NCBI RefSeq assembly: GCF_001194135.2
Contig: NC_068986.1
Span: 45,557,665 to 45,596,765 of the forward strand
Direction: 5' to 3'
From: Octopus bimaculoides
Taxonomy: Eukaryota
Length of the DNA: 39,101 nucleotides
Shown: positions 393 through 21,620 of the stretch, piece after piece
How the letters are laid out: each line of letters opens with the position of its first letter
Numbering within the stretch: position 1 is the stretch's first letter
The notes under the pieces: model-generated
Told to the model about the DNA's origin: nothing
Seen by the model: the letters and a program-made list of their open reading frames with translations, nothing else
Databases searched by the model: none
Program-made: the position numbers and the translations under genes

Positions 393-394
<2 letters not shown>

Positions 395-457
<63 letters not shown>

Positions 458-530: not shown

Positions 531-584
531 AATTCAACTTACGTTGAAAGTCAACAAACCTTGCTTTAGAAGCGTTGAGATGTA

Positions 585-829: not shown

Positions 830-832
830 CGC

Positions 833-838
833 GCGCAC

Positions 839-885
<47 letters not shown>
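833..885. repeat. (CA)n microsatellite
   Basis: Read directly. Confidence 0.95.
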
Positions 886-889
<4 letters not shown>

Positions 890-919
890 TGTATTTATAT
901 TCTACGTATGTATTTATAT

Positions 920-1025
920 TAAGGATACGGGGAGGTAAACGTACCAACACTGGTTGTCAAGCGGCAGTGGGGGATAAACAAGATACACACACGCACACAC
1001 ATACACAAACGCACACACATATACA
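920..1025. mobile_element. Fragment of CA-microsatellite-containing SINE
   Basis: ACCAACACTGGTTGTCAAGCGGCAGTGGGGGATAAAC followed by CA repeats resembles ACCAGCACCACTTGTCAAGCAATGATGGGGACAAAC within the SINE at 25283-25619. Confidence 0.5.
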
Positions 1026-1100
1026 CCCTATATGTATACATATATAAAATTTATATAGGAGAGACACCCAAACCTATGACAGGCTGTTAGAAAACAATAA

Positions 1101-1565
1101 ATCAACGACTTAGATATAACAGATAGAGTAGAGATTTTAGCTAAAAGTAACGCCTTTATTATTATCAAAGACCATAAACCGAACTTTGCCCCGAACCTCA
1201 AATACCGCTTGATCAATCCGGCCAAATCCGAGATCGGTCTGGCGAGCGAATACATACTGAGGAACATCAACAACAACATAAAGAGAGCCACCAATCTCTA
1301 CCTATGGCGTAGCACCAACGAGATGATTGCTTGGTTTAATACCAACAAGAAGTGAAGCAGAGCAAGGTTCACTCAGTTTGATATAGTCGATTTTCACTCG
1401 TCTACATCGTAAGGGATATTGGTCAAGGCGCTTTCCTTCGCTAGGGGCTCCATTGACATTAGCGATAGGGACATAGATATCATTATGCGTGCCAGTAAAA
1501 CAGTGCTGTTCAATAAAGGTTAGACCTGGCTGAAGTAATCTGACCCGTGGGGTCATTTGACGGCC
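1101..1565 (+). pseudogene. Penelope-like element reverse transcriptase fragment (degenerate)
   Basis: Frame from 1113 reads DITDRVEILAKSNAFIIIKDHKPNFAPNLKYRLINPAKSEIGLASEYILRNIN...LWRSTNEMIAWF...ARFTQFDIVDFHSS...KALSFA...IIMRASKTVLFNKG*TWLK, ending in GSFDG after a small deletion; several in-frame stops. Not in the ORF track. Confidence 0.8.
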
Positions 1566-1751
1566 ATAATATAAGGGTCAGTAAACACAAGTGTATTTAA
1601 ATAGTTATTATAGAAGATTAACAACACGTTGAGACTAGATATTTTACACATATTTAGATATATCTAATATCTACCATTCGTGAAAATTTCAAGTGAATGG
1701 AATAAATATTTCGTAAGTTATGAGGAAATAAACAAACGATCTTCCAAATTG

Positions 1752-2556
1752 CAATGGCCAAAAGTTAAGGGTCACAGAGAAAAAAATGAACTACTAACCG
1801 AGGTATTTGTTGTTTAGAAGACTGTTAATGGGTTAACAGTTACTTCTTATGATCTTACATTATTGGAACATTCAACTTTCAACATGGCGTCCTGTAATGA
1901 AAAACAAAGGATTGTGTCCCTTCACCAAGAGAGCAAGTCAACTTCTGTGATAGCAACTACTGTAGGAAGACCTAGAAGTGTTGTGCAACGAATTGTAGCT
2001 CGTTTAAAGTCATCAGGATCAACAGATGCTATACCCAAAACTGGTAGACCTCGTAAAACTTCACCAAGACAGGATCGTATTATGATCAGAATATCACTGA
2101 AGGATAGATTTAAGAGTGCTGCTGAGATATCCCGCAACTTTAGCCCCACTTCCGATGTCAACGCATCGCGCAAAACAGTTTCTCGGAGGTTACGAGATTC
2201 TGGGTTGCTTGCTCGGGCATCAGTAAAAAAACCTCTGATCTGCAAGAAGAATCAAAGAGCCAGTTCTCGAAAAGTTATCTCGTGCATGTGTGAAGAAGTC
2301 AGTGAAATATGGAGGAGGCAGTGTAATGGTATGGGGAGTGATTTTTGATGCTGGTTCTGGTCCACTTATTTGCCTACAAGGGACTGTCAATGCTAAAATC
2401 TAAAAAAGCAGATTCTTAGACAGCATGCCCTCCCACATCTCTGATCCTCGTCAGATCAACCTCCTATCTTTGTGCAGGACAACGCTCCCAGTCACACTGC
2501 GGAGAGAGTCAAAGATTTTCTGAGTGATGAAGGGGGTTAATCTCAAGGACTGGCCA
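1752..2556 (+). mobile_element. Tc1/mariner (Tc1-type) transposon remnant
   Basis: Left TIR-like CAATGGCCAAAAGTTAAGGGTCAC at 1752. ATG at 1884 opens an HTH region (GRPRKTSPRQDR...TVSRRLRDSG...KKPL). Shifted frames give VKYGGGSVMVWG, FVQDNAPSH and DWP. No right TIR. Confidence 0.9.
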
Positions 2557-2664
2557 CTCCGAAGTTCCTCATCGATGCCCTACTCTTGACGCCCTTTAGA
2601 ATTTCTACTCTGTTCTCTTTGGTCTCTACAGAGATGACGCTCTGGCAATCTCTAGAAGCCCCTG

Positions 2665-2666
<2 letters not shown>

Positions 2667-2700
<34 letters not shown>

Positions 2701-3191
2701 NNNNNNNNNNNNNNNNNNNNNNNNNNNNNNNNNNNNNNNNNNNNNNNNNNNNNNNNNNNNNNNNNNNNNNNNNNNNNNNNNNNNNNNNNNNNNNNNNNNN
2801 NNNNNNNNNNNNNNNNNNNNNNNNNNNNNNNNNNNNNNNNNNNNNNNNNNNNNNNNNNNNNNNNNNNNNNNNNNNNNNNNNNNNNNNNNNNNNNNNNNNN
2901 NNNNNNNNNNNNNNNNNNNNNNNNNNNNNNNNNNNNNNNNNNNNNNNNNNNNNNNNNNNNNNNNNNNNNNNNNNNNNNNNNNNNNNNNNNNNNNNNNNNN
3001 NNNNNNNNNNNNNNNNNNNNNNNNNNNNNNNNNNNNNNNNNNNNNNNNNNNNNNNNNNNNNNNNNNNNNNNNNNNNNNNNNNNNNNNNNNNNNNNNNNNN
3101 NNNNNNNNNNNNNNNNNNNNNNNNNNNNNNNNNNNNNNNNNNNNNNNNNNNNNNNNNNNNNNNNNNNNNNNNNNNNNNNNCACACACACAA

Positions 3192-3232
<41 letters not shown>
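2667..3232. other. Assembly gap (2701-3180) flanked by (TA)n and (CA)n
   Basis: N run between microsatellites. Confidence 0.99.
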
Positions 3233-3270
3233 GATATATAAAATTTAGTCATATTTCTACCTATCATCAG

Positions 3271-3377
3271 GAATCTGGAGGAGGAATATCGATGTGTTTT
3301 GAAGAAGCAAAATTATCCTAACAAAATATGTAAAATGCCAGCTCAATGGGAGACAGATTACAAAGACAACACTTGTG
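3271..3377 (+). CDS. Cys-rich repeat protein, exon a (phase 2 to 1): NLEEEYRCVLKKQNYPNKICKMPAQWETDYKDNTC
   Basis: Acceptor TTTCTACCTATCATCAG, donor GTGAGT, 107 nt and open. CKMP..WE.DYK..C matches CKMP..ME.EYK..C of the exon at 5997. Confidence 0.85.
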
Positions 3378-3696
3378 GTGAGTAGCATCTTTTTAAAGTA
3401 AAATTTAGAAAAGTACAGCGGTATTGTTTAAGAAATACTGTTTAAGGATTCGTTCCCATTCGTTCGCTACCCTCTATCTGTTGATCAATTTGAGAAAGAA
3501 AAAAGAAAAAGAAAAGAAATAAACAAAGTTGGATTTTAAGTAAATATAGCTGTCAGATTGTTAAATACAAAATTAGACTTTGGTATACCGAAGTAAATGA
3601 AATGCTTAAAATTCATGTCAAATGCGAGCTGGTGAAATTAATTGTGCACCAGACAAAATGCTTAGTGACATTTCTTCTGTATATTATGTTCTGAAT

Positions 3697-4077
3697 GGAG
3701 GCGCAATGGCCTAGTGGTTAGGGCAGCGGACTCGCGGTCATAGAATCGCAGTTTCGATTTCCAGACTGGACATTGGGAGTGTTTATTGAGCGAAAACACC
3801 TAAAGCTCCACGAGGCTCTGGCAGGGGATGATGGCGAACCCTGCTGTACTCTTTCACCACAACTTTCTCTTACTCTTACTTCCTGTTTCTGTTGTGCCTG
3901 TAATTCAAAGGGTCAGCCTTGTCACACTGTGTCACGCTGAATATCCCCGAGAACTACGCTAAGGGTACACGTGTCTGTGGAGTGCTCAGCCACTTGCACG
4001 TTAATTTCACGAGCAGGCTGTTCCGTTGATCGGATCAACTGGAACCCTCGACGTCGTAAGCAACGGAGTGCCAACAC
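3697..4077 (+). mobile_element. tRNA-derived SINE (family 1), full length
   Basis: A box TGGCCTAGTGG (3707), B-box-like GTTTCGATTTCC (3751), 14-bp TSD ATTATGTTCTGAAT at 3683-3696 and 4078-4091; near-identical copy at 27202-27593. Confidence 0.92.
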
Positions 4078-5061
4078 ATTATGTTCTGAATACAAATTTT
4101 ACCGAGATGGACTTTTTCATTCTTTGGTTGTCGATAAAGTAAGTACTAAGGGTCGATGTGATCAAATTGCTTTCTCCCCTCAAAAAAGATGTACAGAGAT
4201 TACTACTTGAAAATATTAAGCTGAATACCAGGAGTGTGTCTATGTACTGAGGTTTGGCTATCTTTATGTTGACGAGAGGCAAGTAAATTCGGTGTCGTAA
4301 ACGAAGTGATTCTTCTTAACCCGCAGTCATGACTGACCGAGAATTCTCTGTATTCGTTTGGAATCTGATTGGTCGGAACTCAGGACAAATCACCTCATAC
4401 GCCATGGCCTACATCAGGTTTTCGAATTCAAAGCATTGTTACAAAGTAATGAAAGTTTCATAAATTCATCTTCCAATCAATTTAAAAAAAAATTGTCCTG
4501 ACTTTCAGATTATGAGATTATTATTGGGGTTAGATATAGAGTTTTCATTTCTAATGAATACTATTTTGCTTAGTTTACGTTCGTATCACTATTATATCCT
4601 GTAAATAAAATTAGTTATTATTGTGATATAAGTTAAAAGATGCAGAATGATATTCATATTAGGAAATATCATTTTTGATAAACAATAGTAATACTAATTT
4701 TATACCAAATTGTTTTTGCTTTGGCATAACTCCATCAGCGTGCATATGTATTTCAGAACTTTATTCTCCTTTGATAGACCTAATTTTGAATAATCTGTAT
4801 AAGCTTTCATAATCTTCTAATAACCTAAGTCAATTGAAAATTTACGAAGTATTTATTATTTATTTGTGAAAGCCAATATAGTTTCATTCCTGTAAGGGCA
4901 AGTTTATTTTCAGTGCCTGCTCTGTATTTCTGTAAGATGTTTTCATCAAACTTGATTAAATTGACTTATTTTCAAAAGCATTTCATTCAATACCATATTG
5001 TCTCTAACTTAGGAATGGTACTTTAGACCTAATACGTCATTATAGAAATATTGCCTCTTCA

Positions 5062-5091
5062 TGCTGCTGCTGCTGCTGCTGCTGTTGTTGT
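5062..5091. repeat. (GCT)n(GTT)n microsatellite
   Basis: Read directly. Confidence 0.9.
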
Positions 5092-5225
5092 TAACTCCAG
5101 GCCAGTGCTGAAAAATATTTTTTACTGAAAGTATGTTGCTTTTTCAAAGTTTATATGTTGCTGGGAAAGTGTTAAAGTTAAGATGAATTTCTAATGTGTA
5201 AATCCTTAATTTATACCAATTTCAG

Positions 5226-5289
5226 AACATCCTTGTTATAATATTTCAAAACCAAATTTGAATGGCATGTCAGATGAAAATAAGTGCAA
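5226..5289 (+). CDS. Cys-rich repeat protein, exon b (phase 1 to 2): EHPCYNISKPNLNGMSDENKCK
   Basis: Acceptor AATTTCAG, donor GTAAGT, 64 nt; phases fit both neighbours. Confidence 0.8.
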
Positions 5290-5996
5290 GTAAGTATATT
5301 GATATTTTTAATGTAATATTATAAAGCATAGAAAACATGTTAGTGAATTAGGTGCCAATACAATATGAATAGATATTCTATTTTATATAATGAAATGTAG
5401 CTTCTCAATGCATTATGTACTATGCTAGATGTTTGGAAAAATAACTGTTATTTATTATTGACATGAACACAAATAGAATATTAATATATCAAAAGTGAAG
5501 AATAATAACTGTTATCAGCCATAGAAGGGTCCATTCTCATCAGAGAATCTTAACTTAGTAAGAAGTATTTCTAAGTAGTGCTTCTAGCTAAGTGAAGGTA
5601 ATTAAGTATTGTGGGAAACATTTTTCAAATTATTTCTATATGCTTACAATTGTAAACATTTCATTTTATTGAAGTAAGTTAAGCTTATGAATGTGCTCCT
5701 TAAAAGGAAAAAAAAAACGTATATAAATGCCATTACTAGTGCAACTGATGAGCTTCACAGTAAACAAAATATTGACTTCTCGAATAGGCTCAGATATATT
5801 GGGAAAAAGTACAGTTGTATGAATCAAACCTACTACATGTTTGTACGTGTCAGTTGCACACAAATGAAAACAAAGTTGATCCTCAAAGGATTTAGTGGAT
5901 GACAATAAATACCGTCAGGACCTTTGTTTCTTCTAATTCGTTTTTGGAAGAGAAAATGTTAAACTTTTACTTTAATTGCAATGTACTTTTTTTTAG

Positions 5997-6085
5997 ATCA
6001 TTGAACTCATATAAATCAAATTTAGACAGTGAGAATTGCAAGATGCCAGATGACATGGAAAAAGAATATAAGTCTTCAAAATGCG
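5997..6085 (+). CDS. Cys-rich repeat protein, exon c (phase 2 to 1): SLNSYKSNLDSENCKMPDDMEKEYKSSKC
   Basis: Acceptor CTTTTTTTTAG, donor GTAAGC, 89 nt; paralogous to exon a. Confidence 0.87.
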
Positions 6086-6822
6086 GTAAGCATCTAAGCA
6101 TTTAAATTATGTTCAGTAATTTTATTTGATAATTGTTTAACTTATGTCTTATTCCCATGAGCTTCTAGCTCAAATCTCATTTTTCATTCTGTTTAGAAAG
6201 CTCATTTTATAGTAATGTTTATGGAACATCATTATAATCATATAGCGTTAGTTATATTGAGCTTGTGTAGCATTTGTAAAAATTTAACAGTTCATTTGAT
6301 ACAGAAGTCATGAATAATAGAAAACATAAAGAAAGAGGGAAGCATAAAATAATACGTAGTCTATTTTAGACATAAATTCTCGATGAAATCTCAAGTCTCT
6401 AAACTCTAAACTTAAAATCACATTTCAAGTGCAACTTAAAATGGTCCAAATGTTGAGTCCAGTCTGTTAAAAATGCTCGTTTTAGAAAACTCTGTTGAGG
6501 AGTGAAAACCATCCAAATTTATAAAAAAATGGATTAATTCCATCATTTACTACAATTGTAGATTTACTATATTAAAAATATTTTGTATTCTCTGGTTTGT
6601 CTCAGCTGTTAGTGAGTTAAAGTTGAACAAGTTTCTTTCCTGAGTTGACACAAGTTCACCTTATTTAAGTCGTCCTCAAAACAAGGTCTTCTACAATGAT
6701 ATTAAAAATTACGGCAAAATTTATGAATATTCTGTTGGTGAATGGAGACTGTTCAATCAATATGATCAGAACAGAAATTTTAGAGAAATAGTCAGCTGGA
6801 AAAAAGAGTGATTGATGAAATA

Positions 6823-8378
6823 CCGTAAAAACCCATGTAATTTACGTACTTTTTTTCGCGGGTGCGTAAATTACATGAATAGATCGTTTCCAGAAAGTTT
6901 TAGAAATTTATTTGTTGAAAAATGACGTACAAATATAAACATTCATACGGGAAGTTGATTAATTTAATGTCAGAATAGGTTTTCACAGAAAAAAATATAA
7001 TGAAGTTGACTTTTATTTATGCCGAACGGTATAATGCTTACTTTTTCTGTATAAATTTACTAAAACCATTAAATAGTTAACTACTTTTTGAAGTTTGACG
7101 TTCATGCTGGTAATCACGGTCCGGGCCATATTTTACATTGCTCGGAGTTTCTACCTATCGCAATGGAGCCCAGCAGTTTCCTTAAATAAATCAGTTTTTC
7201 TCTGCTTAAGAAGTCTATCTTGCGTTTGCCTCCAGGAAGCTATTGTTCGCTTTCTGCGTGTTAGGACTTTGAAATTCATCACTACCGATATCGTCTCTAC
7301 AGCTCTTACTGCATCTAACGCCAATGACAATATCATAATTCATCCTTGCGCATGTAAACTCACTAAGTGAATATGACTTAGTGTTCCTACAGAAACCTTC
7401 ATTTTACCTTATACGATGTTTAATGTCGTTTCACAATCATGTTGAATTATGCACCAGTCTTATGTTCTCTTCATAGAATACTTGTAATGTATGTATTATC
7501 AGTTCTTTTGGTATAGTAGATTTTTGCTATTCTTGTTTATGTCTCCTCACAGACATGTATATTCTAATAAATCGCTTCTTAAATTTTGCACCTCTCTTGT
7601 TCTATAAACACTGAGTTAAACTTGCAAAACTGTTTATTTTCTCCTTTCGATTTTTAATGTTTATTTTAGCGGGTTACCAAACTATCAGTTTGGTCTCCCG
7701 GCTAAAACAGTAATAACAATTTTTAAAGTTTGCTTGACATTTTATAAGTGTGAAAGGGATTAAAATTTCGATACTCCGTATGAAAGGTTCCGACAAGAAT
7801 AGGCAGAAAATCAGAGCTTGAGACAAGAAGACACTTTCAACCAATCAGAATTCTGTTTACATAATCAGTTTGATTGGTTACCTTCCTCTGTCAGTTGAGT
7901 AAAGTGTCATCCAAGCTGATGTTTATTGGTAATTAAACTTATTTTGCAACACTTGTGAGTATTTATCAACCTTGTTTTTGTTGATAAGAATTATCGACAA
8001 CTTTTCTCCTGATCCTGATTTGAGAAGACATACAGAAGTATGCTAAAGATTGGACTTAATCTCTTGTAGGCAAGAAATGTAAAACAAAGTTTATCATAAA
8101 CAACTCAAACACTTCGTAATTCAATAGTTTTCAGTATGATACCTGTTAAACAGAAATTATTTTTATTTAATGAAAATTTTATAAAATCTTATCATAAGTA
8201 AGTGAAATTATGCTAAATACAACTAAATGGAAAACCTTTTCCCCCTGGCCATGTCAGCAATTCTGAAAACCTTTGGGTGCGAATTTTACACGAGTTGAAG
8301 CTTTTTTTTTAACAACTTTTATCCTGAAAATCACCTGCGTAAATTACACAGGTGTGCAAATTACATGGGTTCTTATGG
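6823..8378 (-). mobile_element. pogo/Tigger-like (Tc1/mariner superfamily) non-autonomous DNA transposon
   Basis: TA|CCGTAAAAACCCATGTAATTTACG at 6821 and GTGCAAATTACATGGGTTCTTATGG|TA at 8380 form TIRs with a TA TSD. Subterminal CGTAAATTACA repeats. Minus-strand peptide AVRAVETIS..FKV..IASWRQTQDRL (7151-7336) resembles a pogo N-terminal HTH. Confidence 0.78.
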
Positions 8379-9149
8379 TAATCAATTTTCTTATAATGAT
8401 GAAGTTGGAACTGAAAAATATTCTCACTAGCTGGTGAAGGCATCTTTTATTCATTCTACAATGTTTCCTATCAAAGCTGGCAGACAAACTATAATTTTTT
8501 ATCACTAGATATAAAACCAATTTCCATATAGAAGACAATAAATATTCTACCCAGTATACTATTTGTCCTTATTTATGGACCTGTTCGAGGAAAGACACTC
8601 ATTATGGCAATGAATTTAACTGGGACCATAATAAATATATTAAATAAAATATTAGCTTTATTTTATACTCAATACAAAGACCATATACTTTTGAATTCAG
8701 TCTAAAGTCCCTATACTTTTAGGATAAATTTCAAATATAACAGTAGGATATCTAATGTAATATTCATGTTTTTTTTTCTAGTGTATACTAGTGTGCACTG
8801 CAAGGAAAATGAACTAACATCACTTGACAATCAAAACTACCTTATAGTTTTGACTTGCCTGCAGTTTACCTTGTTTTCTAAGAGTTGCACATTTTAAACC
8901 AGAAAGAAATTCTGATCTATAAGAAATTGTTCCCACTGTAGATTTAAGTGGTGTTGTTACTGCTGCAATTTTTATACTGTTTTCCTGCTGTGTTGTTAAA
9001 ATTATTCCATTTCACATACAACTGATGAATGTAGAGATGTCATATTTTTATGATTCCTGCCTTTAAAAGTCTTGTTATTGCTTGTACAGTCTTATTTGCT
9101 TCATGTTAACAAATATGTTATTTCTATATTCTTTTTGCTATAAATGCAG

Positions 9150-9222
9150 ACACTTATTGCAACACAGAGAGTAGGTGCATGATAACGGTATCCGACAGAG
9201 ACAGCAGAAAATTAAATTGCCG
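9150..9222 (+). CDS. Cys-rich repeat protein, exon d (phase 1 to 2): DTYCNTESRCMITVSDRDSRKLNCR
   Basis: Acceptor CTTTTTGCTATAAATGCAG, donor GTATGT, 73 nt; same Cys layout as exon f. Confidence 0.85.
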
Positions 9223-9603
9223 GTATGTATTTTAATTTTTGTTGATTTTATAAGGTATTTCACATGAAACTTGCTAATATAGGTAAACATTTATGAGAAT
9301 AAAATCCTCATTGCTGCACAATTCCAGTTTGCTCAGATAGTGCAGCTGCAATAGCAACCTTTAATGGCATTTGCTTTAAATACTCAGAACACCAGCTAAA
9401 TTTTATTCAAAGCATACCACAAAAGTGAAATTGTGTGTTGTTTTCAATCATTTCTTTAAGTTTAACTTCAATAAAAGGGAGATCAGCATCTATAGCTCCT
9501 TCAAATCTGCTTGTACTGGATAATCAGGAAATTTAGAGGTGAGTTTAGTAAGGTTAATGTAAAACTTAGACTTTCAAATGTTAGTAGCAGTAGGGAAAAT
9601 TTT

Positions 9604-9605
<2 letters not shown>

Positions 9606-9667
<62 letters not shown>
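9606..9667. repeat. (AG)n microsatellite
   Basis: Read directly. Confidence 0.97.
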
Positions 9668-9670
<3 letters not shown>

Positions 9671-10267
9671 CCATTACATGCTCAAATAAAGTGTACAATT
9701 TTAATAGCTTAATTAACACAAAAGTTAATTAATTTAGTGGTAGTTGAGTGGTATTGCTAGGTTAAAAAATAGAAACTGAGGTCAAACAAGACTAAAGGAA
9801 AAATAGAGAAATTTGTGATAGTAGTAACATTGAAAACAAAGACAAGGTAAAAATGATAGCTTTGGATTAAGAGATGTTTCAAAGCATGTCCTCCAGGTCC
9901 TGATTAAGTAGGAAACAATATCAAAATGAAACAAAGTTAGTAGAGTTGAGTGAGGCATTTGAATTTAGTTATTTTGGTAAATCTGCCATATATTTAATGA
10001 AGGTCCAGAAATGGCACAATTTGAACAAACAAGGAATTCCTAGGTGAGTTGCAACTTTTGCATGGTTTGTTGTGAGTTATATGTTAGATACTGTAGTCTG
10101 TTAAACTGATGAGCAGCAGATGTAGATAGCAGAGATGTTTAACTCTTTTGTTACCTTATTTCTGTTGAAATACATAACCTTTGTTTGGAATTTTTTTTTA
10201 AATAATGAAGAATTTTGTAAAATGATTTTGTCATTGAAAATAAAAAAGAGAGAATATAGAAAGCTTC

Positions 10268-10568
10268 TGAAATATAAAGGTTTTATAAAACCTTTATATT
10301 TCATGCACAAAGGCCCATCTTCAGAAAAAAACAGTCTAGGAAATATCCAGTTATGCAGTTTCTGTTAATCCATTCAATTCCCTTAACGTTATTTAGCGAC
10401 AGCAGCCACTCTCCAAACATAAGTGTAACTGATGCTCCACTGCTACTGCTGCTACACAACACATGGGGATTTGAATGGGTTAACGGAGTTTGCATAATTG
10501 GACATTTCCCAGACTGTTTTTTCCTGAAGATGGGCTTTTGCACCTGAAATATAAAGGTTTTATAAAAC
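10268..10568. mobile_element. Foldback / MITE-like element with palindromic terminus
   Basis: Arms ~10280-10384 and ~10464-10568 are inverted; perfect 36-bp palindrome at 10268-10303. Confidence 0.75.
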
Positions 10569-11000
10569 TTTCTGCATTGTCAAAAACTTTCCTATTTTCT
10601 CTCTTTTTACTTTCTGCAATATTACAATGCTTCAAGCAAACTGCAACACTCTTATAACTTTGTCATTATGTTAACTGGTGTTGGGAATATAAATTAACAC
10701 AAAATTTTGATGAGAGGTTTCAATTTATATAATTTCAGAACACAAAATTTGTAACATAAAACCAAGTGCAGTTTACACTACATCATATCATTAATATTAA
10801 AATCTTGGTTAGTAATCTATAATATAATCTGCTGATATGGTCTACTGACACAAATATATCAACAATATAATGAAATATACACAAACTATGGAATGGAGTT
10901 GAAGACATCATCTTTTGTAGACATAACACTTTTTGCTGATATCTAAATATTTTGATTTTAGTGTACTACACACATACACACACACTTATGTATGTGCACA

Positions 11001-11004
<4 letters not shown>

Positions 11005-11040
<36 letters not shown>

Positions 11041-11337
11041 GTTTGCTGCCACTTCAACTTGGCTGTTCCGTATGTAATTATGTTACTACCATTTTGATTC
11101 CGGAGGACNNNNNNNNNNNNNNNNNNNNNNNNNNNNNNNNNNNNNNNNNNNNNNNNNNNNNNNNNNNNNNNNNNNNNNNNNNNNNNNNNNNNNNNNNNNN
11201 NNNNNNNNNNNNNNNNNNNNNNNNNNNNNNNNNNNNNNNNNNNNNNNNNNNNNNNNNNNNNNNNNNNNNNNNNNNNNNNNNNNNNNNNNNNNNNNNNNNN
11301 NNNNNNNNNNNNNNNNNNNNNNNNNNNNNNNNNNNNN

Positions 11338-11370
<33 letters not shown>
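11005..11370. other. (TA)n, assembly gap 11109-11337, (CA)n
   Basis: Read directly. Confidence 0.97.
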
Positions 11371-11373
<3 letters not shown>

Positions 11374-12230
11374 TCTATACATAACTATCATGCTATTATA
11401 TACTTATTCGTCTATGTCTACCCTGATTACAAAGTTCATCATCTGCTCGTTCTCTATTGAATTTGTCATTGTACTCTGATTATTCCAATACCTATCCTAC
11501 TTCATTTGATACAGGTTTGATACAGATTTACAATGAAGAACCCAAAACTTCTGGAGTCATTTCAGGATTGTTTCTCTTATGGTATAGAGCTCTGCTGATA
11601 GCCAAGTAGCTAGAAATGCATTAACTGTTCTGCCAGAGGGCACCATGGAATGTCTGTTGGTATTTTTAACTATTATTGCTCAAGGTGAAAGACAATAAAG
11701 TTATGGGATACAAATTAAATGGATATTGAATAAGAGACATTTACATATATGGTCAACCATTTGGATTACAATGGATGTGGAGAATAGTTAGGAACAGCAG
11801 TTACTTAAGCGTTTAAAGTTACTGATTCATAGTTTTTAAAAAAGAGAATGAATTTTCAGCTGGCAAAATATTTTGTTAAAATTGCACAAGCTGGTTAGTG
11901 GTACTTCGTAAAGTGCTACTACAATTTGCTACTAACAATGGTAAATGCTTTGATATAAGTATTAGGACCAACTGTGTCAAGTAGCTTTATTGTTCGATTA
12001 CATCCGACATCTATTCCACCAACAACTGAAGTCTCCAAATCAAAGTGATCTGTTCATTTTCTAAATAAACTGTTTCTATGTTCATATTTGCTATCAACTC
12101 ATTTCAGTTAAGTAAAAAGTGATTATCTATATAAATATTTTAGAAGCTGACCAGAACTATATTTTATCGATCAGTAGCTGCAATAATTGTTTACTTTTGG
12201 TTAACAAATCTAGCTTTTACTATGTTACAG

Positions 12231-12319
12231 TGGAATATCAGTTGGCATTAAGTGTTTGGAGAATGCTAAATGTCCTGTATCACAGTATATCCATGATGCT
12301 TATGCTTATTATGGGTGTG
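12231..12319 (+). CDS. Cys-rich repeat protein, exon e (phase 2 to 1): GISVGIKCLENAKCPVSQYIHDAYAYYGC
   Basis: Acceptor CTTTTACTATGTTACAG, donor GTAAGT, 89 nt; C-x5-C spacing equals that of exon g. Confidence 0.87.
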
Positions 12320-12455
12320 GTAAGTATTTCCTTTTTCATTTTAATTTTATTATTTCTCCACAAAAATGTTGTTTAAAAAATGTAAACATATTTAATGTTC
12401 AATTCTAATTTTCCTATCTTTGGAAAGACCTAAAATTATGATCCAAATAAATCAC

Positions 12456-12674
12456 TAATACCGGTTTCAAATTGTGGCACAAAGCTAGCAATTTCAGGGA
12501 GGGTTTAAGTCAATTACACTGACCTCAGTGCTCAACTGGTACTTATTTTATCAACCCTGAAAAAATAAATGGTAAAGTTGACCTCAGGAGGATTTGAATT
12601 CAGAACGTAAAAACGGGTAAAATATCACTAAGCATTTTGCTCACCTTGTTAATGATTCTGTCAGCTCACTGCCC
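12456..12674 (-). mobile_element. tRNA-derived SINE (family 2)
   Basis: Reverse complement reads GGCAGTGAGCTGACAGAATC...GATAAAATAAGTACCAGTTGAGCACTG...GTGCCACAATTTGAAACC, as in the other family-2 copies. Confidence 0.85.
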
Positions 12675-12705
12675 TAAATATGTTACTAATATTATCAGAA
12701 AGTAG

Positions 12706-13052
12706 AAGGCAGCAAGCTGGCAGAATCCTTAACATGCTGGGCAAAATGCTTAGTGGTATTTTGTCCGTCTTTACATTCTGAGTTTAAATACTGCCGAGGT
12801 TGACCTTGCCTTTTACTCTTTCAGGATCAATAAAATAAGTACCAGTTGAGCACTGGGGGTCGATGTAATCGATTTATCCCTTCCCTGAAATTGCTGGTTT
12901 TGTGCCAAAATTTGAAACCAATACTGACAGGAAGTACAAGGAGACAAGTTGGTAGAATTGTTATCATGCCAGGCAAAATGCTTAGCTGCATTTCATTCAT
13001 CTTGAATGTTCTAAGTTCAAATTCTGCCTTGGTTGACATTTCCTTTCATCCT
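12706..13052 (+). mobile_element. Family 2 SINE (12706-12923) plus partial copy (12948-13052)
   Basis: AAGGCAGCAAGCTGGCAGAATC head and GATAAAATAAGTACCAGTTG body; the second copy runs into (TG)n and a gap. Confidence 0.85.
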
Positions 13053-13115
<63 letters not shown>

Positions 13116-13234
13116 NNNNNNNNNNNNNNNNNNNNNNNNNNNNNNNNNNNNNNNNNNNNNNNNNNNNNNNNNNNNNNNNNNNNNNNNNNNNNNNNNNNNN
13201 NNNNNNNNNNNNNNNNNNNNNNNNNNNNNNNNNN
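13053..13234. other. (TG)n followed by assembly gap 13116-13234 (further gap at 13691-13718)
   Basis: Read directly. Confidence 0.97.
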
Positions 13235-13308
13235 CCGATACTGCTAAGAGCATTATACGTGCAAAACGAATGGTCCCCCTATGACCAGCTATAACTTTTA
13301 ACTTCTTA

Positions 13309-13505
13309 AGAATTATTTAGAATTACAAACAAATGGACTAAACGGAAAATACACTCATAGAATGTCACTAAATCGTCATAGTCCAGAGAATCATAACCAT
13401 TTCACGTGTTGAAATTGTTATGATTCTTTGAACGATAATTGATGAGGATTTAGCGATATTCTGTGTATTTTCCGTTTGTTCTGTTTGTACTTGTATATAA
13501 TTTCT
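13309..13505. mobile_element. Foldback element (near-perfect hairpin)
   Basis: Inner stem AGAATCATAACCATTTCA / TGAAATTGTTATGATTCT (17/18) around a 5-nt loop; outer stem AAACGGAAAATACAC...CTAAATCGTCAT pairs with ATGAGGATTTAG...GTGTATTTTCCGTTT. Confidence 0.75.
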
Positions 13506-13855
13506 GAACATATTATTTCCTGTAACACCACGCAAGTTCCTATTTTGTAACCATTCTGTACACACACGCACACACACACACATGCTTCTGTCATGTGAGA
13601 AACCACATCATGTATATAAACGCCAATTAAAAAACGGTATGAACTTTTTCCCAGCCCAATTTTTATATGTATGACAAAGTTAAACTATGCNNNNNNNNNN
13701 NNNNNNNNNNNNNNNNNNACACACGTAAGGTTTAACATATTTAAACGTTAATTATTGGTTATGGACAAATATTCAGCAACTGAACAGCTGAAAAATGTTA
13801 AAATAATCTTGTTATTTGTATTGTTCAATACATGTAATATTTTTTTCTGTTGCAG

Positions 13856-13940
13856 GTTCCAGTTGCAATGGTAATGTAGAAGCTGAGTGTATAGCTATAT
13901 TAAAAGAGCCACTAAACAGCACAAGGGAAGAGCAATGCGG
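13856..13940 (+). CDS. Cys-rich repeat protein, exon f (phase 1 to 2): GSSCNGNVEAECIAILKEPLNSTREEQCG
   Basis: Acceptor TTTTTTTCTGTTGCAG, donor GTAAAT, 85 nt and open. Confidence 0.87.
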
Positions 13941-14480
13941 GTAAATATAGAAACGTATCCTTCAACCATATCTTCCAAAAGACGTTCAATATAACTTATA
14001 TAACTTAGAAAAGCAACATTCAGAAAAGGATTGGCATGATGTCTAGTTTTTTCTATGCTACTTTTAATATAATACGTTATATCTTAATATTTATGGAGTA
14101 TGGATCATATGAACTAATGTGGTTTTGTAGAACTACTGGAAGTCTTTACCTTTATATTGTGCATACGTCCTTAATTTATATTTGTAGCTCAATGAAAGGT
14201 AATCAGTTACGCAATTGATTACTTAAGAGTGAAATGTCTTGACCAAGGGCTAAACTGTTATATTCAGGGAATAGATTTGTGTTTTATTCTTTCTAGTTTC
14301 GAAGTTTGTGTAAGAGAATGAAGGACAGGAAACTTTCATTGTTAGTATTTGAACCAAATCATCTGAAGTATCGAACAAGATAATGTAAAGTATATAGTAA
14401 GAATCTGTACATCATCCCGCAAATTTCAAACGCAATTTACCTTTGATAATAGATATTACTACTGTTATTTAAGTGCCCTT

Positions 14481-14611
14481 AAGGCGGTGAGCTGGCAGAA
14501 TCGTTAAGACGTCGGGAAAATGCTTAGCGGCATTTCACTCGTCTTTATGTTCTGAGTTCAAATTCCGTGGAGGTTGACTTCACCTTTCATCCTTTCTGGG
14601 TCGATAAAATC
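14481..14611 (+). mobile_element. Family 2 SINE, 3'-truncated
   Basis: AAGGCGGTGAGCTGGCAGAATCG...GTTCAAATTCC...CTTTCATCCTTTCTGGGTCGATAAAAT. Confidence 0.85.
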
Positions 14612-14629
14612 CACACGTTGATGGAATGA

Positions 14630-15771
14630 CATCATCAGTTTTTAAATTCCAATTTTATAATAGGCGAAAAGAAAAAGACAGAAAAAAGATAGAAAAAAGA
14701 GGAAAGAAAAAAGAAGAATATTTAATCAAACAGTTTTGTATAAATTTGATGATATTCTCCTGTCAGTTTATTCATTCCTGCAGGGCGTGATGTTAATAAC
14801 CCGCAAACATATTTCTCCTCATGCATTCCGAGAAGTGAAAATGAAGCAGATTCAGAATATTTTCTGAGAATATGCACTTTCAAGTCTTTTTCAAAACTGT
14901 AGTCGTTTGAAACGAAATGTCCAGCAAGTTCTGTCGAACTACTGTTATTGTTCCTGACGTCGAATCTGTGCCCATCAAATCTGTTTAATTGTTCTGTTGT
15001 ACAACCAACATAAATCAAGTTGTATTTCGTGCATTCTGCCGCGTACACCAAATGGGAATCTCTACATGTCTGTATAAATCATAACATTTCTGTTATGATT
15101 CCTGATGGTATTCACTTGACTCAGTGAACAGGGCTTACCTCTCTTGCGGCTGGTTTTCAAGGTACAGCGTGCAGATACACCAATGTTCGTTTTCTTGGAG
15201 TCAGAAATAGAGGTCAATAATTCTCTTATGTTCTTATTCCGTCTAAAGGCTACAATAGGCGGCTGAGGAAATATCTGTTTGCAAAGAGGATATTTTTTCG
15301 CCACATGCTGGTAACTTTCCTGCAACACTTTTGAAATGCCAGCGAAATGTCGGTGCCAGTTAATCACTAAAGGAATTCTGTCATCTATTGTATTGCGTTT
15401 CCTAAAATTATGCGTGAAGGTTTGACTATCTTTGCTAATCTTAGCTATTTTATTTGCTATTCCCTTTAATTGTGATTCACTGTAACTACGTTTGACATAA
15501 TTATGTGCAAAAGCATTTGCATGTTTCCAGTAATCTCCTATGTCAGTACAAATCCTCAAAAATTGGGATTTCGAATTTGACTGAATAACATGATGTTGAT
15601 GATCAGAGCGGTGGTGGAGATAAATTTTTTTTGCCTGTGTGGACGCTGGTTGCTCTTGTTCACACTTTAAATTTAAATTTCTATAATTCTGAATATTTAT
15701 CACCTCTTATTTTGAACTTGACAAAGACAGACTTACTGTCAAAATATCGTTCAACCAATAAAATATCTATT
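14630..15771 (-). mobile_element. Penelope-like retroelement 3' part: RT thumb, linker and GIY-YIG endonuclease
   Basis: ORF 15062-15703: YLHHRSDH..H...SQFLRIC...IPLVINWH...IFPQPPIVAFRRNKNIRELL. ORF 14722-15051: VYAAECTKYNLIYVGCT..LNRFDGHRFD...LLTSRPAGMN. One frameshift between them; purine-poor 3' tail. Confidence 0.9.
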
Positions 15772-15772
15772 A

Positions 15773-16152
15773 CTAGCAGTATAGCCCGGCGTTGCCCGGG
15801 ATTAAGTTACGACTATTAAGCTAATCAAGCGATTTGCTTCAAACCAAACTAAATTACACCGACGTCAAATTTGAGCGAAATCCATTGAAATTCGTAAACG
15901 TTTGGCTGAAAAATGGGTTGCTGACAATTTGATTGGGAAATCCCATAAGGAATCGGTTTATCGATTTTTCCACTCATCGATTTTTTTTCTGGAGAACTTA
16001 AAGCATTCAAAGATCTCATGAGTCCTAAATAACGTTGGCATCAAGTTTGAACAAAATACGTCAAAATTGGTAAAAGTTATAGTTGAAAATGGGGTGTAGC
16101 CAATTTTAGTGGAGAATCCTATAAGGAATCGGTTTATCAATTTTTCATCCTG
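15773..16152 (-). mobile_element. Non-autonomous Helitron-like element
   Basis: Minus strand reads hairpin CCCGG-GCAACG-CCGGG, 8 nt, then CTAG|T, the canonical Helitron 3' end. Internal ~29-bp direct repeat at 15941 and 16118. The 5' end is tentative. Confidence 0.6.
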
Positions 16153-16285
16153 ATGAAGGGAATTGCTTTTTGAATTTTTCGGTATATTTTTTGTTAATTC
16201 TCTTGTTTACACTTTTTTATGTAATCCCCTGCCGCATCATCTTGTCAATCCTTGTGGTTAATAAAGAAAGCATTATTTTAGCAAA

Positions 16286-17160
16286 GAGCCGTAGAGTGAC
16301 AGAATCGATTGAGCGTCGAAAAAATTGTTCTTGCGGTAATTGTTCTGGATCTTTATCTTCCCACTTCAAATTCCGCCGAAGTAAACATTACCTTTCGTAC
16401 CCCCGGGGTCGATAAAATGAAGTAACAGTTAAGTTCTTGGGTTGATTGTTTTAACTAACCCCTCCTCTCAAAACTACAGGCTTTGCGTCTAAATCAAAAA
16501 CCATTATCATAAAAAGAAAGCAGTGGCATATTGGCTGAATCCTTAGCGCGCCGGGAAAATGCTTTGCAGTATTTCTTTCAACTCTTTACATTCTGAATTC
16601 AAATCCTACTTTTACTACTATTACTCGAGCTGGCAGAATGGTTACCAAGTCGGAAAAGTTCAAATTTTGCTGAGGTCGACTTTGTTTTCATCCTTCCAGA
16701 GTCGAGAAAATAAGTACTAGTTAAGTACTGGGGTTGGTATACCCGATTATGTCCCTCCACCGAAAATTGCTGGTCATGTGCCAAAATTTGAAACCATTAA
16801 GTTGGCGAGGCTGCAGAATCTTTAGCGCTCCAGACAAAATGCTTAGCATTATTTCTTCCGGCTCTGTTTTCAAATGCTATAATAATAATAATAATAATAG
16901 TGTTTGATAATAATAATTTTTTAAGGCGATGAACTGGCAGAAATCGTTAGCACGGCGGAGAAAATGCTTAGCAGCATTTCGTCCGTCTTTACGTTCCGAG
17001 TTCAAATTCCGCCGAGGTCAACTTTGCCTTTCATCCTCTCGGGGTCGATAAGTTAAGTAGCAGTTGAGTACTGGGATCGACGTAATCAATTTAACCATTC
17101 CACTACCAAAGAAAAAGAATTCAGGCCCTGTGCCTTTAGTAGAAAGGATTATTATTATAA
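16286..17160 (+). mobile_element. Cluster of five same-orientation family 2 SINE copies or fragments
   Basis: Heads at ~16286, 16520, 16627, 16803 and 16923, separated by short (AAT)/(CTA)-like tails. Confidence 0.8.
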
Positions 17161-17728
17161 TCATCATGGTGATTAATTTAAGAATCAGAGAAATGTTCAA
17201 CAAAATACCTTACGATATTTAATTATGTCTATTAATTGTTTCTAAATTGGAATAGCATCAAGCTTGAATTTGCTGTTTTCCTACAGGGGTTGATGTAAAA
17301 TACGTTGCAGTTAAGTACTCGGAGTAACTTGAATTCACTTGGACCATATCCTAGTAAATAGCGCTACTCATTTGTTGGCTTATATTTATTGACGAGTAAA
17401 AATATAGATTCTTTTAACCCTTTACCTGTCCAAAGCATTTGTTTTCAGACTTTTAGTCAGCCCTTGTTTCATATGTTCTGAGAAGTATAAAGCTTTCCAT
17501 TCATAAGTCCAAATTACTCTGGTGGTTGAATAAAATTGGGGATGTGTATGATACATGGATGTTCAGATGCCAGGGAAATATTTTCTGTGTATCACTTGTA
17601 TTAATAATTTACAGGATAGGCAAAGGTTTATTCACAGGAGCACGAGGAAAACATTGTGAATAGTGTCAACTTACATGTTTTACTGCGTATTATATCGATT
17701 CAACAATATTTTTTTTATCTCTTCCTAG

Positions 17729-17811
17729 ATATTTTAGAGAAAAACGTGGATGTTATGACAAAGCCAAGTGTGAGAGGAATGATCAATATATGAATCTTCT
17801 GGAATGTAGTG
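17729..17811 (+). CDS. Cys-rich repeat protein, exon g (phase 2 to 1): YFREKRGCYDKAKCERNDQYMNLLECS
   Basis: Acceptor TTTTTTTATCTCTTCCTAG, donor GTAAGT, 83 nt; C-x5-C-x11-C as in exon e. Confidence 0.87.
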
Positions 17812-18769
17812 GTAAGTAGCCCTTTACTTATTGTTAGGCACAACTAAGGCAATTATTAGTTTGGCTAATGCGGAAATAAGGTGAATTAAAGTGTAATGTA
17901 TGGAAAATTGCCCCACTTTAAATCTTCGGATGTCAAACATGGCAGATTTGTTTTAGGCCACTATTCAATGATTAATAATGCCAGATCTAAATATTTTCAG
18001 TCTGAATTTTGGTATTGTAATACACATTTATGTCTACTATCAGAATGTTATTGATTTAATTACCTGAAATTGTCGTTCAGCCTTTTAATTTGAATGTCCA
18101 TAAAATCAATACCAGACACAACTAGGAGCTGAATTTCTCAGGATTGACTAAGTTCAAAGACCACGTCACTCAGGAAAAGTTTCAGGCAATTTGAGAGACC
18201 ACCTTTCAAGTCTGATTCACAGTTATCTGGACTGTTCCATGGTTAAAATTTGAATATTTATTCATTTATGTAGAAATGACTGATTCTAACTCTATTCACA
18301 TGAAACTATTTTGTTATGGAAGTTCATTCTCTATGTCATACTTATATCCTTAATTCCTGCGTCTCCCCCACGTATAATAGCTTTACGTTATTGGGTTCAT
18401 AAAATTTTAATCATGTCTTGATTTTGATTTGTTTTCTTGTTTTTGCGAGAGTTTTGATCTGGAACTGAGTTGAAACAACGATGTCATGTTTGAAAAGAGT
18501 CACAATTAATAAAACCTCATCAGCTTTGGTTTATCTATCATTCAGTTCGTTTTACAAAGCAGTTGTTTGTTTATGACATCAAAAATAATTTCCCCTCCAC
18601 CAACCTGTAACCTATTCAATGGATGTACATTTTTAAATGCTTGATTTTTAATTTTTACTGATGCTACATCTCATTAGCATAATCAAACAACAAAGGCTTT
18701 CGAAGAAAAAAAAAAGTGAAATATAGACAAACAACATCTAGTGACCAAGTATTCAGATTTTATTAGATA

Positions 18770-19231
18770 CTAGTGGGACCCGTGAATATTTCACGAAATT
18801 AATAGTAAACGTGTTGGGTTGTTCCTGAAAACTTTATCCAAAATACCTGAAAGCGTAGCTTGTGTTGTATCTGTATCAAAAGATAATCGCTCATCTGCTA
18901 ATCATTTGAAAAGTGAAGGGAATCGGAATATGTTGATTACTTAATGCACTTTATATATTCACTTTATATACTTTATGCACAATTTTATAGACTTAATACA
19001 CAGCACTCTTCCTCTTTCTCTCTCACTCCTCGACTTACCATTTTTGCCTCTCCTTTTTCTTTCGCTCTTCGCCTTTCCCTTCAACTAATCACGTGAAAGC
19101 GTTACAGATGGACTAAATAATAGAGGGAAAAACTTGGTTAAAAAAATTAAACATTTTACTCCGCTGTCCCTCCCCCTATATCCCCTCCCCTTCAACTAAT
19201 CCCGGAAGCGTTACGGACGGGCTAAGATGTT
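18770..19231 (-). mobile_element. Helitron-like non-autonomous element (second family), running into gap 19232-19463
   Basis: Minus strand reads hairpin CGTGAA-ATA-TTCACG, 7 nt, then CTAG|T. A diverged ~40-bp direct repeat CCCTTCAACTAATC...AAGCGTTAC lies at 19077 and 19188. Confidence 0.5.
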
Positions 19232-20019
19232 NNNNNNNNNNNNNNNNNNNNNNNNNNNNNNNNNNNNNNNNNNNNNNNNNNNNNNNNNNNNNNNNNNNNN
19301 NNNNNNNNNNNNNNNNNNNNNNNNNNNNNNNNNNNNNNNNNNNNNNNNNNNNNNNNNNNNNNNNNNNNNNNNNNNNNNNNNNNNNNNNNNNNNNNNNNNN
19401 NNNNNNNNNNNNNNNNNNNNNNNNNNNNNNNNNNNNNNNNNNNNNNNNNNNNNNNNNNNNNNNATATATATAGCATATATTGTTACACTTAACGCGTCAC
19501 TTTCGCGTAACTATAATTATAAACAATTAACTTTTACTTAACCCTTATTTCATCGATTGTTACAAGCTTCAACTGCAAACTTACCTTTTCGACGTTACTC
19601 GTATTTTCTGAAAATATCTTTCACATTCTTTAACATGTTTTGATATGAAATAAATTTAATAATACATATGAACAACCCTTCAGCCTCTGCTAGAAACGTT
19701 TTAACCTATTGATTAAATGAATATTTGCTGCTAAAATTGTTTGAACATTAATCGAATTAGCACTTAGCACTTAGGATGGCATCATGTTAATATTCAACAT
19801 GTACAACAGGCGATTTAGAATTAAGAAAATAAATTCATTGCTATCTTGTTCAAACTGGAGGAAAAAGTTCTACACCAACTACTTTATGGATCTTCAGAAG
19901 ATGATCAGTATTTTTACATTGAACTATACACGGAATGTTTCCAATCCAATCATTCAAAGATCCTGGATCATTTTCTCTAAATGTGTTTTCACATGTAAGA
20001 AATAATAAAAACATGTTAT

Positions 20020-21620
20020 AAATTATTCGTTCTTTGTTGGTCACAAGGGCCACACACAAAATAAAGAATAGTGTGGGTTTACTTTAAAAAAAACGTGTAA
20101 ACAATAATACAATAAAATTGTAAACAATAAAATTCCATATTAGTGGTGTGTCACCCAGGAGCGACTAAAGAATCCCACAGTTCCCGACTCATCCTACTCA
20201 CCAGGGGTGTCATGGTGAGTGCTCCTCTGCCCTTCCTAAATTTCAGCCTACAAGTATATGCTTCATGTGGGTCGATTTCCTCGGGCCATTCGCGCTACAT
20301 TCACATAGCTTTCAACAAATTTAAAGGGAGACAGTACGTCCCTCTTAAATCACATTTTCTTTTCCAAGTGGAGCCTGAAAAAGTTGATGGGCGCTTGAGC
20401 AAAGTGGAAAGTGCCTGTTTTCAGCTCTTTCAGTCACTTCCACCACACAACCACTTTCACCATAGTTACCAGAGAAAAACTGTTGGCCTTTCCTGATCAA
20501 AAGAAGGCGGTGGATCAAAGGAAGGTGATCTTCACGATGGAGTTGGCTGATAATCGGATCCGTTCTACATGTGACAGCAGGTGTTCAATATAACTCCACA
20601 AATCAACAATGCTCGAACACAGTATAAGTGTGTGCAGGCTTGTTTTGTCGTTCTAAGCTTATTTCGTACAGGCGTGGCTTACAGCAATACCATGTCTGCA
20701 GTATTTATCTCAAACCGGCAATGTTCTCTCCTGTAGCAATCCTAAGCCAGACATTTTTAGAAGTTATTCATGGGCCCTGGCCCGAATGTTCTCCGGAAAA
20801 GACCAGCCAATTGATTTCCAATGACACCTAGGATTTTTCCGAGAATGTCGCCTCTTTTGCTCGCCACTAAGCCCTTGCAGAACGTCCACCGACCATATTG
20901 CCCTACAAGCAGAGGATTATGAGTGCACCCAAGTTGCCAGGTGCTCTACATTGGTCTGCATCTTTGTCAAAGTGATGAGCTACCGAAAAGCAAGTTTCAC
21001 AAATGGTGACCTTAACTGTTCACCGTCAAAGAAACGCTAGAGATGTTGCAGCCTTAGTGCAAGCCAGCGCATCATTAGCCAGTACATGCCCAGTCCTCAA
21101 CTCAGCGGATGCTGACCACAAATGGACCGTCATCCTTTGACCAGATTAACTTTTCTTTTGCAACCTGTGGACTTACAATATATATATTGTTTTCGATATC
21201 AAGCAAAACGGCCGCTACTACCTAGCAGATATCTCTTTCTGATGGCAGATAGACCACCTTTATTTATACTATTCTCCAGTCGAAAATGAGTTTTTCACTC
21301 ATTAGGAGTGTTACATAATACCTCCTCTTTTCTTCGCTAGTTGGAAATCTCACCCCATTCGTATCAAATAATTCCCTCGAGCGACAATATTTTGGTGACC
21401 CCAGATTTGTCTAAGACGCTTTTCAATTTCGTTTCTTACTTCCACTCCGATACACTTATATACTTTTTGTGCGGGACGCTAAAGAATACTGTTTTTTCCA
21501 ACACTTGTTAGGAAATATTGGCATTTTTCAAATCTTGCGGTGGTAGCGAAATTAATCCCTGCATTCGAAACATGTTTGCGAAACAGTTAACTACTGGTTT
21601 GCTAGCCACGGCATTGTTGT
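20020..21620 (-). mobile_element. Tx1/L1-clade LINE, copy A: ORF1-like 5' piece joined to ORF2 C-terminus and 3' UTR
   Basis: Minus-strand peptides: CGQHPLS*GLGMYWLMMRWLALRLQHL (~21120), RTFGPGPMNNF*KCLA*DCYR..LPV (~20790), HTLILCSSIVDLWSYIEHLL (~20610). ORF1-like EKTVFFSVP...VRFPTSEEK...IKVVYLPSE at 21500-21200. Confidence 0.75.

Follow-up and report, generated by a model that had tools for sequence, protein, structure and literature searches.

Modular extracellular proteins built from phase 1-1 exon cassettes, the products of exon shuffling, are a textbook architecture, and the Ly6/uPAR three-finger proteins exemplify rapidly evolving surface families in which a disulfide scaffold is combined with a glycosylphosphatidylinositol (GPI) anchor. 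A third point of comparison is the GFR-alpha/GAS1/Gfr-like superfamily (PF02351, SM00907), in which an automatic UniProt name places two octopus proteins; GFR-alpha-like proteins are encoded in invertebrates by multi-exon genes, with a characteristic ten cysteines per domain (PMC3527400). Here we compare these systems with the gene LOC106871163 of Octopus bimaculoides, part of which lies in a 39,101-nt stretch of the genome (the window; ~33% GC, with six runs of N). Seven small exons previously noted in this window are coding exons 7–13 of a 14-exon gene, whose product we take, with high confidence, to be a GPI-anchored surface protein of disulfide-stapled helical repeats that evolves rapidly and is confined to octopods.

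The earlier, sequence-only reading of the window had described seven exons that would splice at GT-AG sites into a frame of 196 residues, and had taken the gene to be hidden. The exons, the sites, and the frame are all present, and an exact exon map reproduces their coordinates within the annotated coding sequence of LOC106871163. This locus lies at ~45.53–45.58 Mb of chromosome CM046606.1 (assembly GCA_001194135.2), and the window matches at 100% identity; window position 1 is position 40362 of the locus sequence L001, in which exon 6 ends at 34337 and exon 7 starts at 43632. The 196-residue peptide matches residues 160–355 of XP_014772974.2 (UniProt A0A0L8HEN3; P0006 in our set) exactly. The gene is thus already annotated rather than hidden, as are its orthologs in O. 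sinensis, O. vulgaris, and Argonauta, although a literature search on the LOC, XP, and UniProt identifiers and on octopus GPI-anchored cysteine-rich proteins found nothing relevant. All seven peptide pieces are encoded on the + strand, a pyrimidine-rich AG acceptor precedes each exon (7/7), and the donors after exons 7–13 read GTGAGT, GTAAGT, GTAAGC, GTATGT, GTAAGT, GTAAAT, and GTAAGT. The codons split by the six junctions specify E, K, D, R, G, and G, and the intron phases are 1, 2, 1, 2, 1, and 2. Chance open reading frames (ORFs) are excluded, since the exons agree base for base with the annotated coding sequence, match independent annotations and orthologs, and have boundaries and phases that are found again in the ortholog and at four paralog loci.

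A HMMER search with the 196-residue query against 1.84 billion representative proteins returned only three real relatives, from O. bimaculoides, O. sinensis, and Argonauta hians; XP_014772974.2 surfaced in a later profile search. A word-indexed protein search with the same peptide gave no match although the identical XP_014772974.2 exists, and this null, taken alone, would have wrongly favored a hidden gene. Hidden Markov models of the two exon types, run against all six-frame segments of the window, found no copies beyond the seven known, and tblastn with the N- and C-termini of orthologs detected neither the 5′ exons nor the GPI-signal exon there. When the window was scanned strictly for exons ending in a cysteine codon, six of the seven were recovered on the + strand, the remaining hits being mainly (TG)n artefacts.

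The architecture of the whole gene can be read from the O. sinensis ortholog (P0005, 81% identical), whose gap-free locus L002 contains 14 coding exons of 52, 88, 89, 79, 92, 76, 107, 64, 89, 73, 89, 85, 83, and 86 nt, with phases running strictly 1, 2, 1, 2 and so on. Exon 1 encodes the signal peptide and ends in phase 1; exons 2–13 form six two-exon units, each between phase-1 introns; and exon 14, which starts in phase 1, encodes AASRNTMFAVIIPVLLAVQMLEKYISLF followed by a stop codon, with small residues preceding a hydrophobic tail. This is the usual form of a GPI-attachment signal. The LOC106871163 precursor would accordingly have ~384 residues, in which a signal peptide is followed by six units of ~55 residues in tandem and then by the GPI-attachment signal at the C-terminus. 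The symmetric phase 1-1 cassette recognized earlier from seven exons therefore extends over the whole gene, in which six such cassettes lie between the phase-1 signal-peptide and GPI-signal exons. Its strict alternation of phases is also borne out beyond O. bimaculoides: the six loci mapped in two species share the same intron positions and phases, and their exon lengths differ only by multiples of 3. Extension of the model places the signal-peptide exon upstream of the window and exon 14, by synteny, in an assembly gap.

The gene resembles the exon-shuffling class in the phase-1 end of its signal-peptide exon, the phase-1 flanks of its units, and its phase-1 tail exon, with units that are symmetric and could be duplicated in frame. 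It differs in that the octopus unit is split by a phase-2 intron and matches no known mobile module. Since, in addition, the number of units is fixed at six, neither another number nor any sign of module skipping or duplication being found among the full-length members, an old internal duplication is indicated rather than ongoing shuffling.

Signals for secretion and anchoring are a consistent feature of the family. The N-terminal hydrophobic core scores 2.8–3.1 on the Kyte-Doolittle scale, and the C-terminus consists of SGAAS, NGAAS, or DGAAS followed by a hydrophobic tail of 12–15 residues scoring 2.6–3.0; by hydropathy and the small-residue motif, both signals are present in all five complete orthologs and paralogs (5/5). 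We infer from these features that the gene product is secreted and GPI-anchored. The suggestion that the exons encode a disulfide-bonded extracellular protein is strengthened by the signal peptide and GPI-type tail, but the two glycosylation sequons cited for it fared differently: NST is invariant across full-length members, and NIS is not. After processing, the product most probably takes the form of an extended helical rod, rich in disulfides and N-glycosylated, that would be held on the outer membrane leaflet by its GPI anchor.

In the O. bimaculoides assembly, the 3′ end of the gene falls, by synteny, into the gap at 19232–19463. The O. sinensis segment L002 79500–81408 aligns to window positions 17310–19231 with 90.7% identity, and L002 81613–83549 aligns to 19464–21470; the unaligned 204 nt of L002 contain exon 14 (81494–81582) and correspond exactly to the gap. 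Because the last exon lies inside this gap, the truncation of the RefSeq model XP_014772974.2 is explained; its artificial end arises by read-through of the exon 13 donor (Table 1), whereas the true end of exon 13, ...LLECS, is likely to sit immediately before the GPI attachment site. In O. sinensis, the sequence corresponding to the gap is A-rich and of low complexity.

One alternative to a GPI-anchored product is that the main product is soluble and secreted, exon 13 being spliced to an alternative last exon at 18274–18353. The older RefSeq model XP_014772974.1 uses this exon, the tail it encodes is not hydrophobic, and 79 of its 80 nt are identical between O. bimaculoides and O. sinensis (the 78 coding nt are 100% identical) versus ~90% in the flanks, so that it may specify a soluble, non-GPI isoform. 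The same conservation could, however, stem from a conserved non-coding element, the exon is not recognisably retained in the two paralogs, and the complete ortholog and paralog models all use the GPI-signal exon, with ..LAVQMLEKYISL. as the best conserved stretch across paralogs. We consider a predominantly soluble product unlikely. The two readings are nevertheless compatible, and both isoforms may exist, with use of the alternative last exon yielding the soluble form.

The other gaps between the exons do not affect the gene model. Those at 11109–11337, 13116–13234, and 13691–13718 lie in introns, with the nearest exon 894, 797, and 138 nt away, respectively, and since the exons are joined by splicing, the length of a gap has no bearing on the frame. 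Their flanks are microsatellites that are colinear with the gap-free O. sinensis introns. In the O. sinensis ortholog, exons 10, 11, and 12 are joined directly and have the same lengths as in O. bimaculoides (73, 89, and 85 nt), so that no exon is hidden in the gaps of introns 10 and 11.

Across the family, the cysteines follow the repeat x3-C-x5-7-C-x10-15-C-x8-C-x5-C-x11-14-C, and all full-length members contain 32 cysteines with near-identical spacing. Of the three units that lie complete in the window, two fit the description of the modules as tandem six-cysteine domains; the third, from exons 8 and 9, has four cysteines. Likewise, the first spacing, given as C-x5-7-C throughout, is 11 residues in exon 7. 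In an alignment of 30 units, C1, C3, C5, and C6 occur in every unit aligned. Unit 4, that of window exons 8 and 9, lacks C2 and C4 in every member, and unit 1, judged by its spacing (C2-x11-C3, C4-x20-C6), lacks C1 and C5 in every member. From these correlated losses, we infer three disulfides per unit, connecting C1–C5, C2–C4, and C3–C6.

AlphaFold2 predicts an all-alpha protein; the mean predicted local distance difference test score (pLDDT) is 66 for the entire protein and 77 for a fragment of four units. In the predicted unit, a short helix lies between C1 and C2, a long helix carries C3 and C4, and a third helix precedes C6. The internal phase-2 intron falls directly after the third cysteine, in the middle of the long helix, so that neither exon of a unit corresponds to a folding piece of its own. 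Between units, sequence similarity is weak, in agreement with the strong divergence reported before: pairwise z-scores are mostly below 3, and the best hhalign E-values are 3e-4 and 4e-3. The same 1-5/2-4/3-6 connectivity prompted consideration of a Kazal-like domain, which was rejected given the all-helical models and the lack of a Pfam match.

The earlier description of the family as unrecognized is upheld by the database searches made here. Neither Pfam nor PDB-sequence searches with the 196-residue peptide gave a match, and when Foldseek was queried with the models of the whole protein and of four units, its matches were generic helical proteins throughout, the best at E 0.6 and 1.2, respectively; the highest Foldseek probability, 0.20, was that of the N-terminal helical domain of RGMB, but at E=8.6. 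The one assignment on record is the UniRef name of P0006 and P0008, 'GDNF/GAS1 domain-containing protein', according to which the gene would encode a divergent member of the GFR-alpha/GAS1 superfamily and hence a GPI-anchored co-receptor whose partner would be NCAM or a ligand of the TGF-beta-like or hedgehog-like kind. There is a general likeness, in that GFR-alpha and GAS1 proteins are GPI-anchored, cysteine-rich, all-helical, and extracellular; the octopus units taken in pairs have 10, 10, and 12 cysteines, loosely like three ten-cysteine domains; and the superfamily is represented in invertebrates (PMC3527400). Against this, Pfam PF02351 gave no match at E<=10 with the window peptide or with eight family proteins. 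A full-length family profile matched no PDB sequences, and a profile of the unit matched CCCH zinc fingers only, GFR-alpha, GFRAL, and GAS1 being absent at E<=10. With human GFR-alpha1 D2-D3, hhalign gave a probability of 0.2%; this control sequence was validated against 6q2n_C at 452 bits. The C-x6-C-x5-C-x10-C triad plus CxC motif, found twice each in the GFR-alpha1 D2-D3 control, occurred in none of the seven members tested (0/7). As to the five-helix, disulfide-rich fold of GFR-alpha D2/D3, the octopus models are all-alpha but of moderate confidence (pLDDT 66–77), and with them Foldseek gave no significant PDB match and ranked GFRAL 24th (E=6.1, TM score 0.10). The two-exon periodicity of the six-cysteine, ~55-residue octopus repeat has no counterpart in the ten-cysteine GFR-alpha domain of ~90–100 residues, and the octopus family is octopod-restricted and fast-evolving, whereas GFR-alpha/GAS1 is conserved across bilaterians. 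Membership in this superfamily is not supported, and the UniProt name, of which SMART SM00907 is the probable source, is not reproduced; we regard a divergent GFR-alpha/GAS1 co-receptor as improbable. The zinc-finger matches (C-x8-C-x5-C-x3-H, TTP type, a motif of intracellular RNA-binding proteins; E=0.014–0.6) depend only on the coincidental C3-x8-C4-x5-C5 spacing and were rejected, since the zinc-binding histidine at +4 is absent in the five unit types aligned and signals for secretion and GPI anchoring are present.

Each Octopus species has three paralogs, which form a cluster of ~260–300 kb; gene order and orientation (+,+,−) agree between O. bimaculoides and O. sinensis, and further members occur in O. 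vulgaris and Argonauta. Outside Octopoda, searches covering 1.84 billion cluster representatives and 5.8 billion clusters gave no match except one weak, protist-like protein, EukProt g1403.t1 (P0004), whose alignment to the last unit of the octopus proteins has E=1.2e-6 in phmmer and a probability of 52% in hhalign. This protein and its metagenome relative P0009, encoded at L005 4040–4633 on a 4.7-kb environmental contig, resemble the octopus proteins in having a signal peptide, cysteine-rich repeats (five), and a hydrophobic C-terminal tail, and have the motif C-[IV]-x-x-L-x2-P-x-[ND]-x-[TD]...C-x-Y-[FY]-x5-C in common with the last octopus unit. They differ in that their repeats are of ~83 residues with eight cysteines and the gene is apparently intron-less. 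They probably derive from a microbial eukaryote, and the likeness may reflect distant homology or convergence.

For three syntenic ortholog pairs, the ratio of nonsynonymous to synonymous substitution rates (dN/dS; Nei-Gojobori) is 0.98, 0.94, and 1.02, rising to 1.05–1.24 when cysteine codons are left out. In the LOC106871163 ortholog pair, the coding sequence is 91.4% identical, compared with 88–92% for introns; dS is ~0.10 for this pair and ~0.24 for the other two syntenic pairs in the cluster. The cysteine scaffold, the number of units, and the intron phases are thus fixed, while the other residues evolve at close to the neutral rate, a pattern of a frozen scaffold with surfaces that are freely changing or diversifying. 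It recalls the Ly6/uPAR proteins, with which the octopus family shares a conserved cysteine framework, hypervariable other residues, tandem clusters, and GPI anchoring; the fold, however, is predicted to be all-alpha as opposed to the beta-rich three-finger fold, and there is no sequence relationship.

Similar rates would be expected of a decaying or functionless lineage-specific gene that drifts neutrally and whose models are mere annotation carry-over, and the match between exon and intron divergence, the lack of literature and of detectable homologs outside octopods, and the truncated RefSeq model would agree with this. The truncation, however, is accounted for by the assembly gap; frames are open over 13–14 exons at six loci in two species, as well as in O. 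vulgaris and Argonauta; no splice site or phase has been lost; and every indel is a multiple of 3. Moreover, at 18.6% residue divergence the chance of retaining 32 of 32 cysteines is ~0.814^32, or ~1e-3, per ortholog pair, and far lower across paralogs, which are 42–66% identical. Because intact frames, fixed cysteines, and fixed splice sites persist over four species and three paralogs, simple decay is ruled out, and a functionless gene is very hard to credit.

Several considerations weigh against the interpretation of LOC106871163 as a rapidly evolving, GPI-anchored helical-repeat protein. A dN/dS near 1 is expected under relaxed constraint as well. The AlphaFold confidence is moderate. The common origin of the units rests largely on cysteine spacing and shared intron positions, their similarity being weak. 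The signal-peptide and GPI calls come from hydropathy and motif rules, and the O. bimaculoides GPI-signal exon is not in readable sequence and was placed by synteny. Support for expression consists in the agreement of four independent annotation efforts. Finally, the UniProt name hints at a known superfamily, perhaps at a distance below the sensitivity of the tests used.

A bolder version of the interpretation can be offered tentatively, as a possibility for which the odds are less than even: the ~55-residue three-helix unit with pairs C1–C5, C2–C4, and C3–C6 would constitute an undescribed extracellular fold, and the genes would be an octopod-born GPI-anchored family under diversifying selection, acting, for example, in chemotactile, self/non-self, immune, or gamete recognition, with a last-exon switch between anchored and soluble forms.

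The features of the window are collected in Table 1. Four of its six assembly gaps are abutted by (TA)n or (TG/CA)n microsatellites (2660–2700, 3181–3230, 11338–11375, and 13060–13115), which probably caused them. A SINE-like (short interspersed nuclear element) dispersed repeat of ~380 nt occurs at 3693–4076 (+) and 27203–27596 (−), with copies that are 93–97% identical in introns of the same gene (L001 11757–12136, 13944–14223, and 31576–31875). Intron 12 contains, at 14722–15703 on the − strand, two adjacent ORFs of 109 and 213 aa with no Pfam match at E<=0.001; by eye, they look like a GIY-YIG/Penelope-type element (YNLIYVG...).

Table 1. Features of LOC106871163 and of transposon remnants in the window (window coordinates).
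Feature	Position	Strand	Remarks
Intron 6, 3′ part	1–3270	+	contains Tc1/mariner fragment and gap 2701–3180; exons 1–6 upstream of window
Tc1/mariner transposase helix-turn-helix region	1863–2348	+	in intron 6; Pfam
Coding exon 7	3271–3377	+	107 nt, phase 2 to 1; second half of unit 3, N LEEEYRC...DNTC
Coding exon 8	5226–5289	+	64 nt, phase 1 to 2; first half of four-Cys unit 4, without C2
Coding exon 9	5997–6085	+	89 nt, phase 2 to 1; second half of unit 4, without C4
Coding exon 10	9150–9222	+	73 nt, phase 1 to 2; first half of unit 5
Assembly gap in intron 10	11109–11337		adjoins (CA)n run; exon not expected
Coding exon 11	12231–12319	+	89 nt, phase 2 to 1; second half of unit 5
Intron 11 stretch	13116–13718		gaps 13116–13234 and 13691–13718; (TG)n flanks; exon not expected
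Coding exon 12	13856–13940	+	85 nt, phase 1 to 2; first half of unit 6, family-invariant NSTRxE sequon
Coding exon 13	17729–17811	+	83 nt, phase 2 to 1; second half of unit 6, ends ...LLECS
Exon 13 donor read-through	17812–17819	+	GTAAGTAG, AGT G/GT AAG TAG (slash, exon end); gives artificial end ...ECSGK, stop, of XP_014772974.2
Alternative last exon	18274–18353	+	E-MTDSNSIHMKLFCYGSSFSMSYLYP, stop; used by XP_014772974.1
Assembly gap hiding coding exon 14	19232–19463	+	by synteny with O. sinensis
LTR (long terminal repeat) retrotransposon reverse transcriptase and integrase	33815–35591	+	downstream of gene; Pfam
LINE-type (long interspersed nuclear element) reverse transcriptase	37312–38145	+	downstream of gene; Pfam

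The neighboring members of the family show that the automatic gene models need revision. In O. bimaculoides, the model of the paralog LOC128248134 (XP_052824678.1; L003 2001–2163) is mis-started and lacks exons 1–6, its first 23 residues being translated from the 3′ end of an intron; matching intron sequence (NLVIFLPIIR) lies upstream of exon 7 in the window. The O. vulgaris protein CAI9724485.1 (P0011, 524 aa) is a chimera that follows the LOC106871163 ortholog up to ...MFAVIIP and then continues into the neighboring paralog. Together with the truncated XP_014772974.2, these intronic-start and gene-fusion models are correctable annotation errors.

The result is modest, as the gene was already in the databases and its phase 1-1 modular architecture is textbook. 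What had been a set of 'uncharacterized protein' models can nonetheless now be described as a defined family, with six two-exon units, 32 fixed cysteines, a GPI tail, and a three-gene cluster, found in octopods only. Surface proteins engaged in fast-moving interactions usually combine a frozen disulfide scaffold with a dN/dS near 1, and one may speculate that the product of LOC106871163 is a co-receptor or binding protein of the cell surface that evolves fast and has a part in, say, recognition, immunity, or reproduction. Genes restricted to one lineage in this way are candidates for novelties of the cephalopods.

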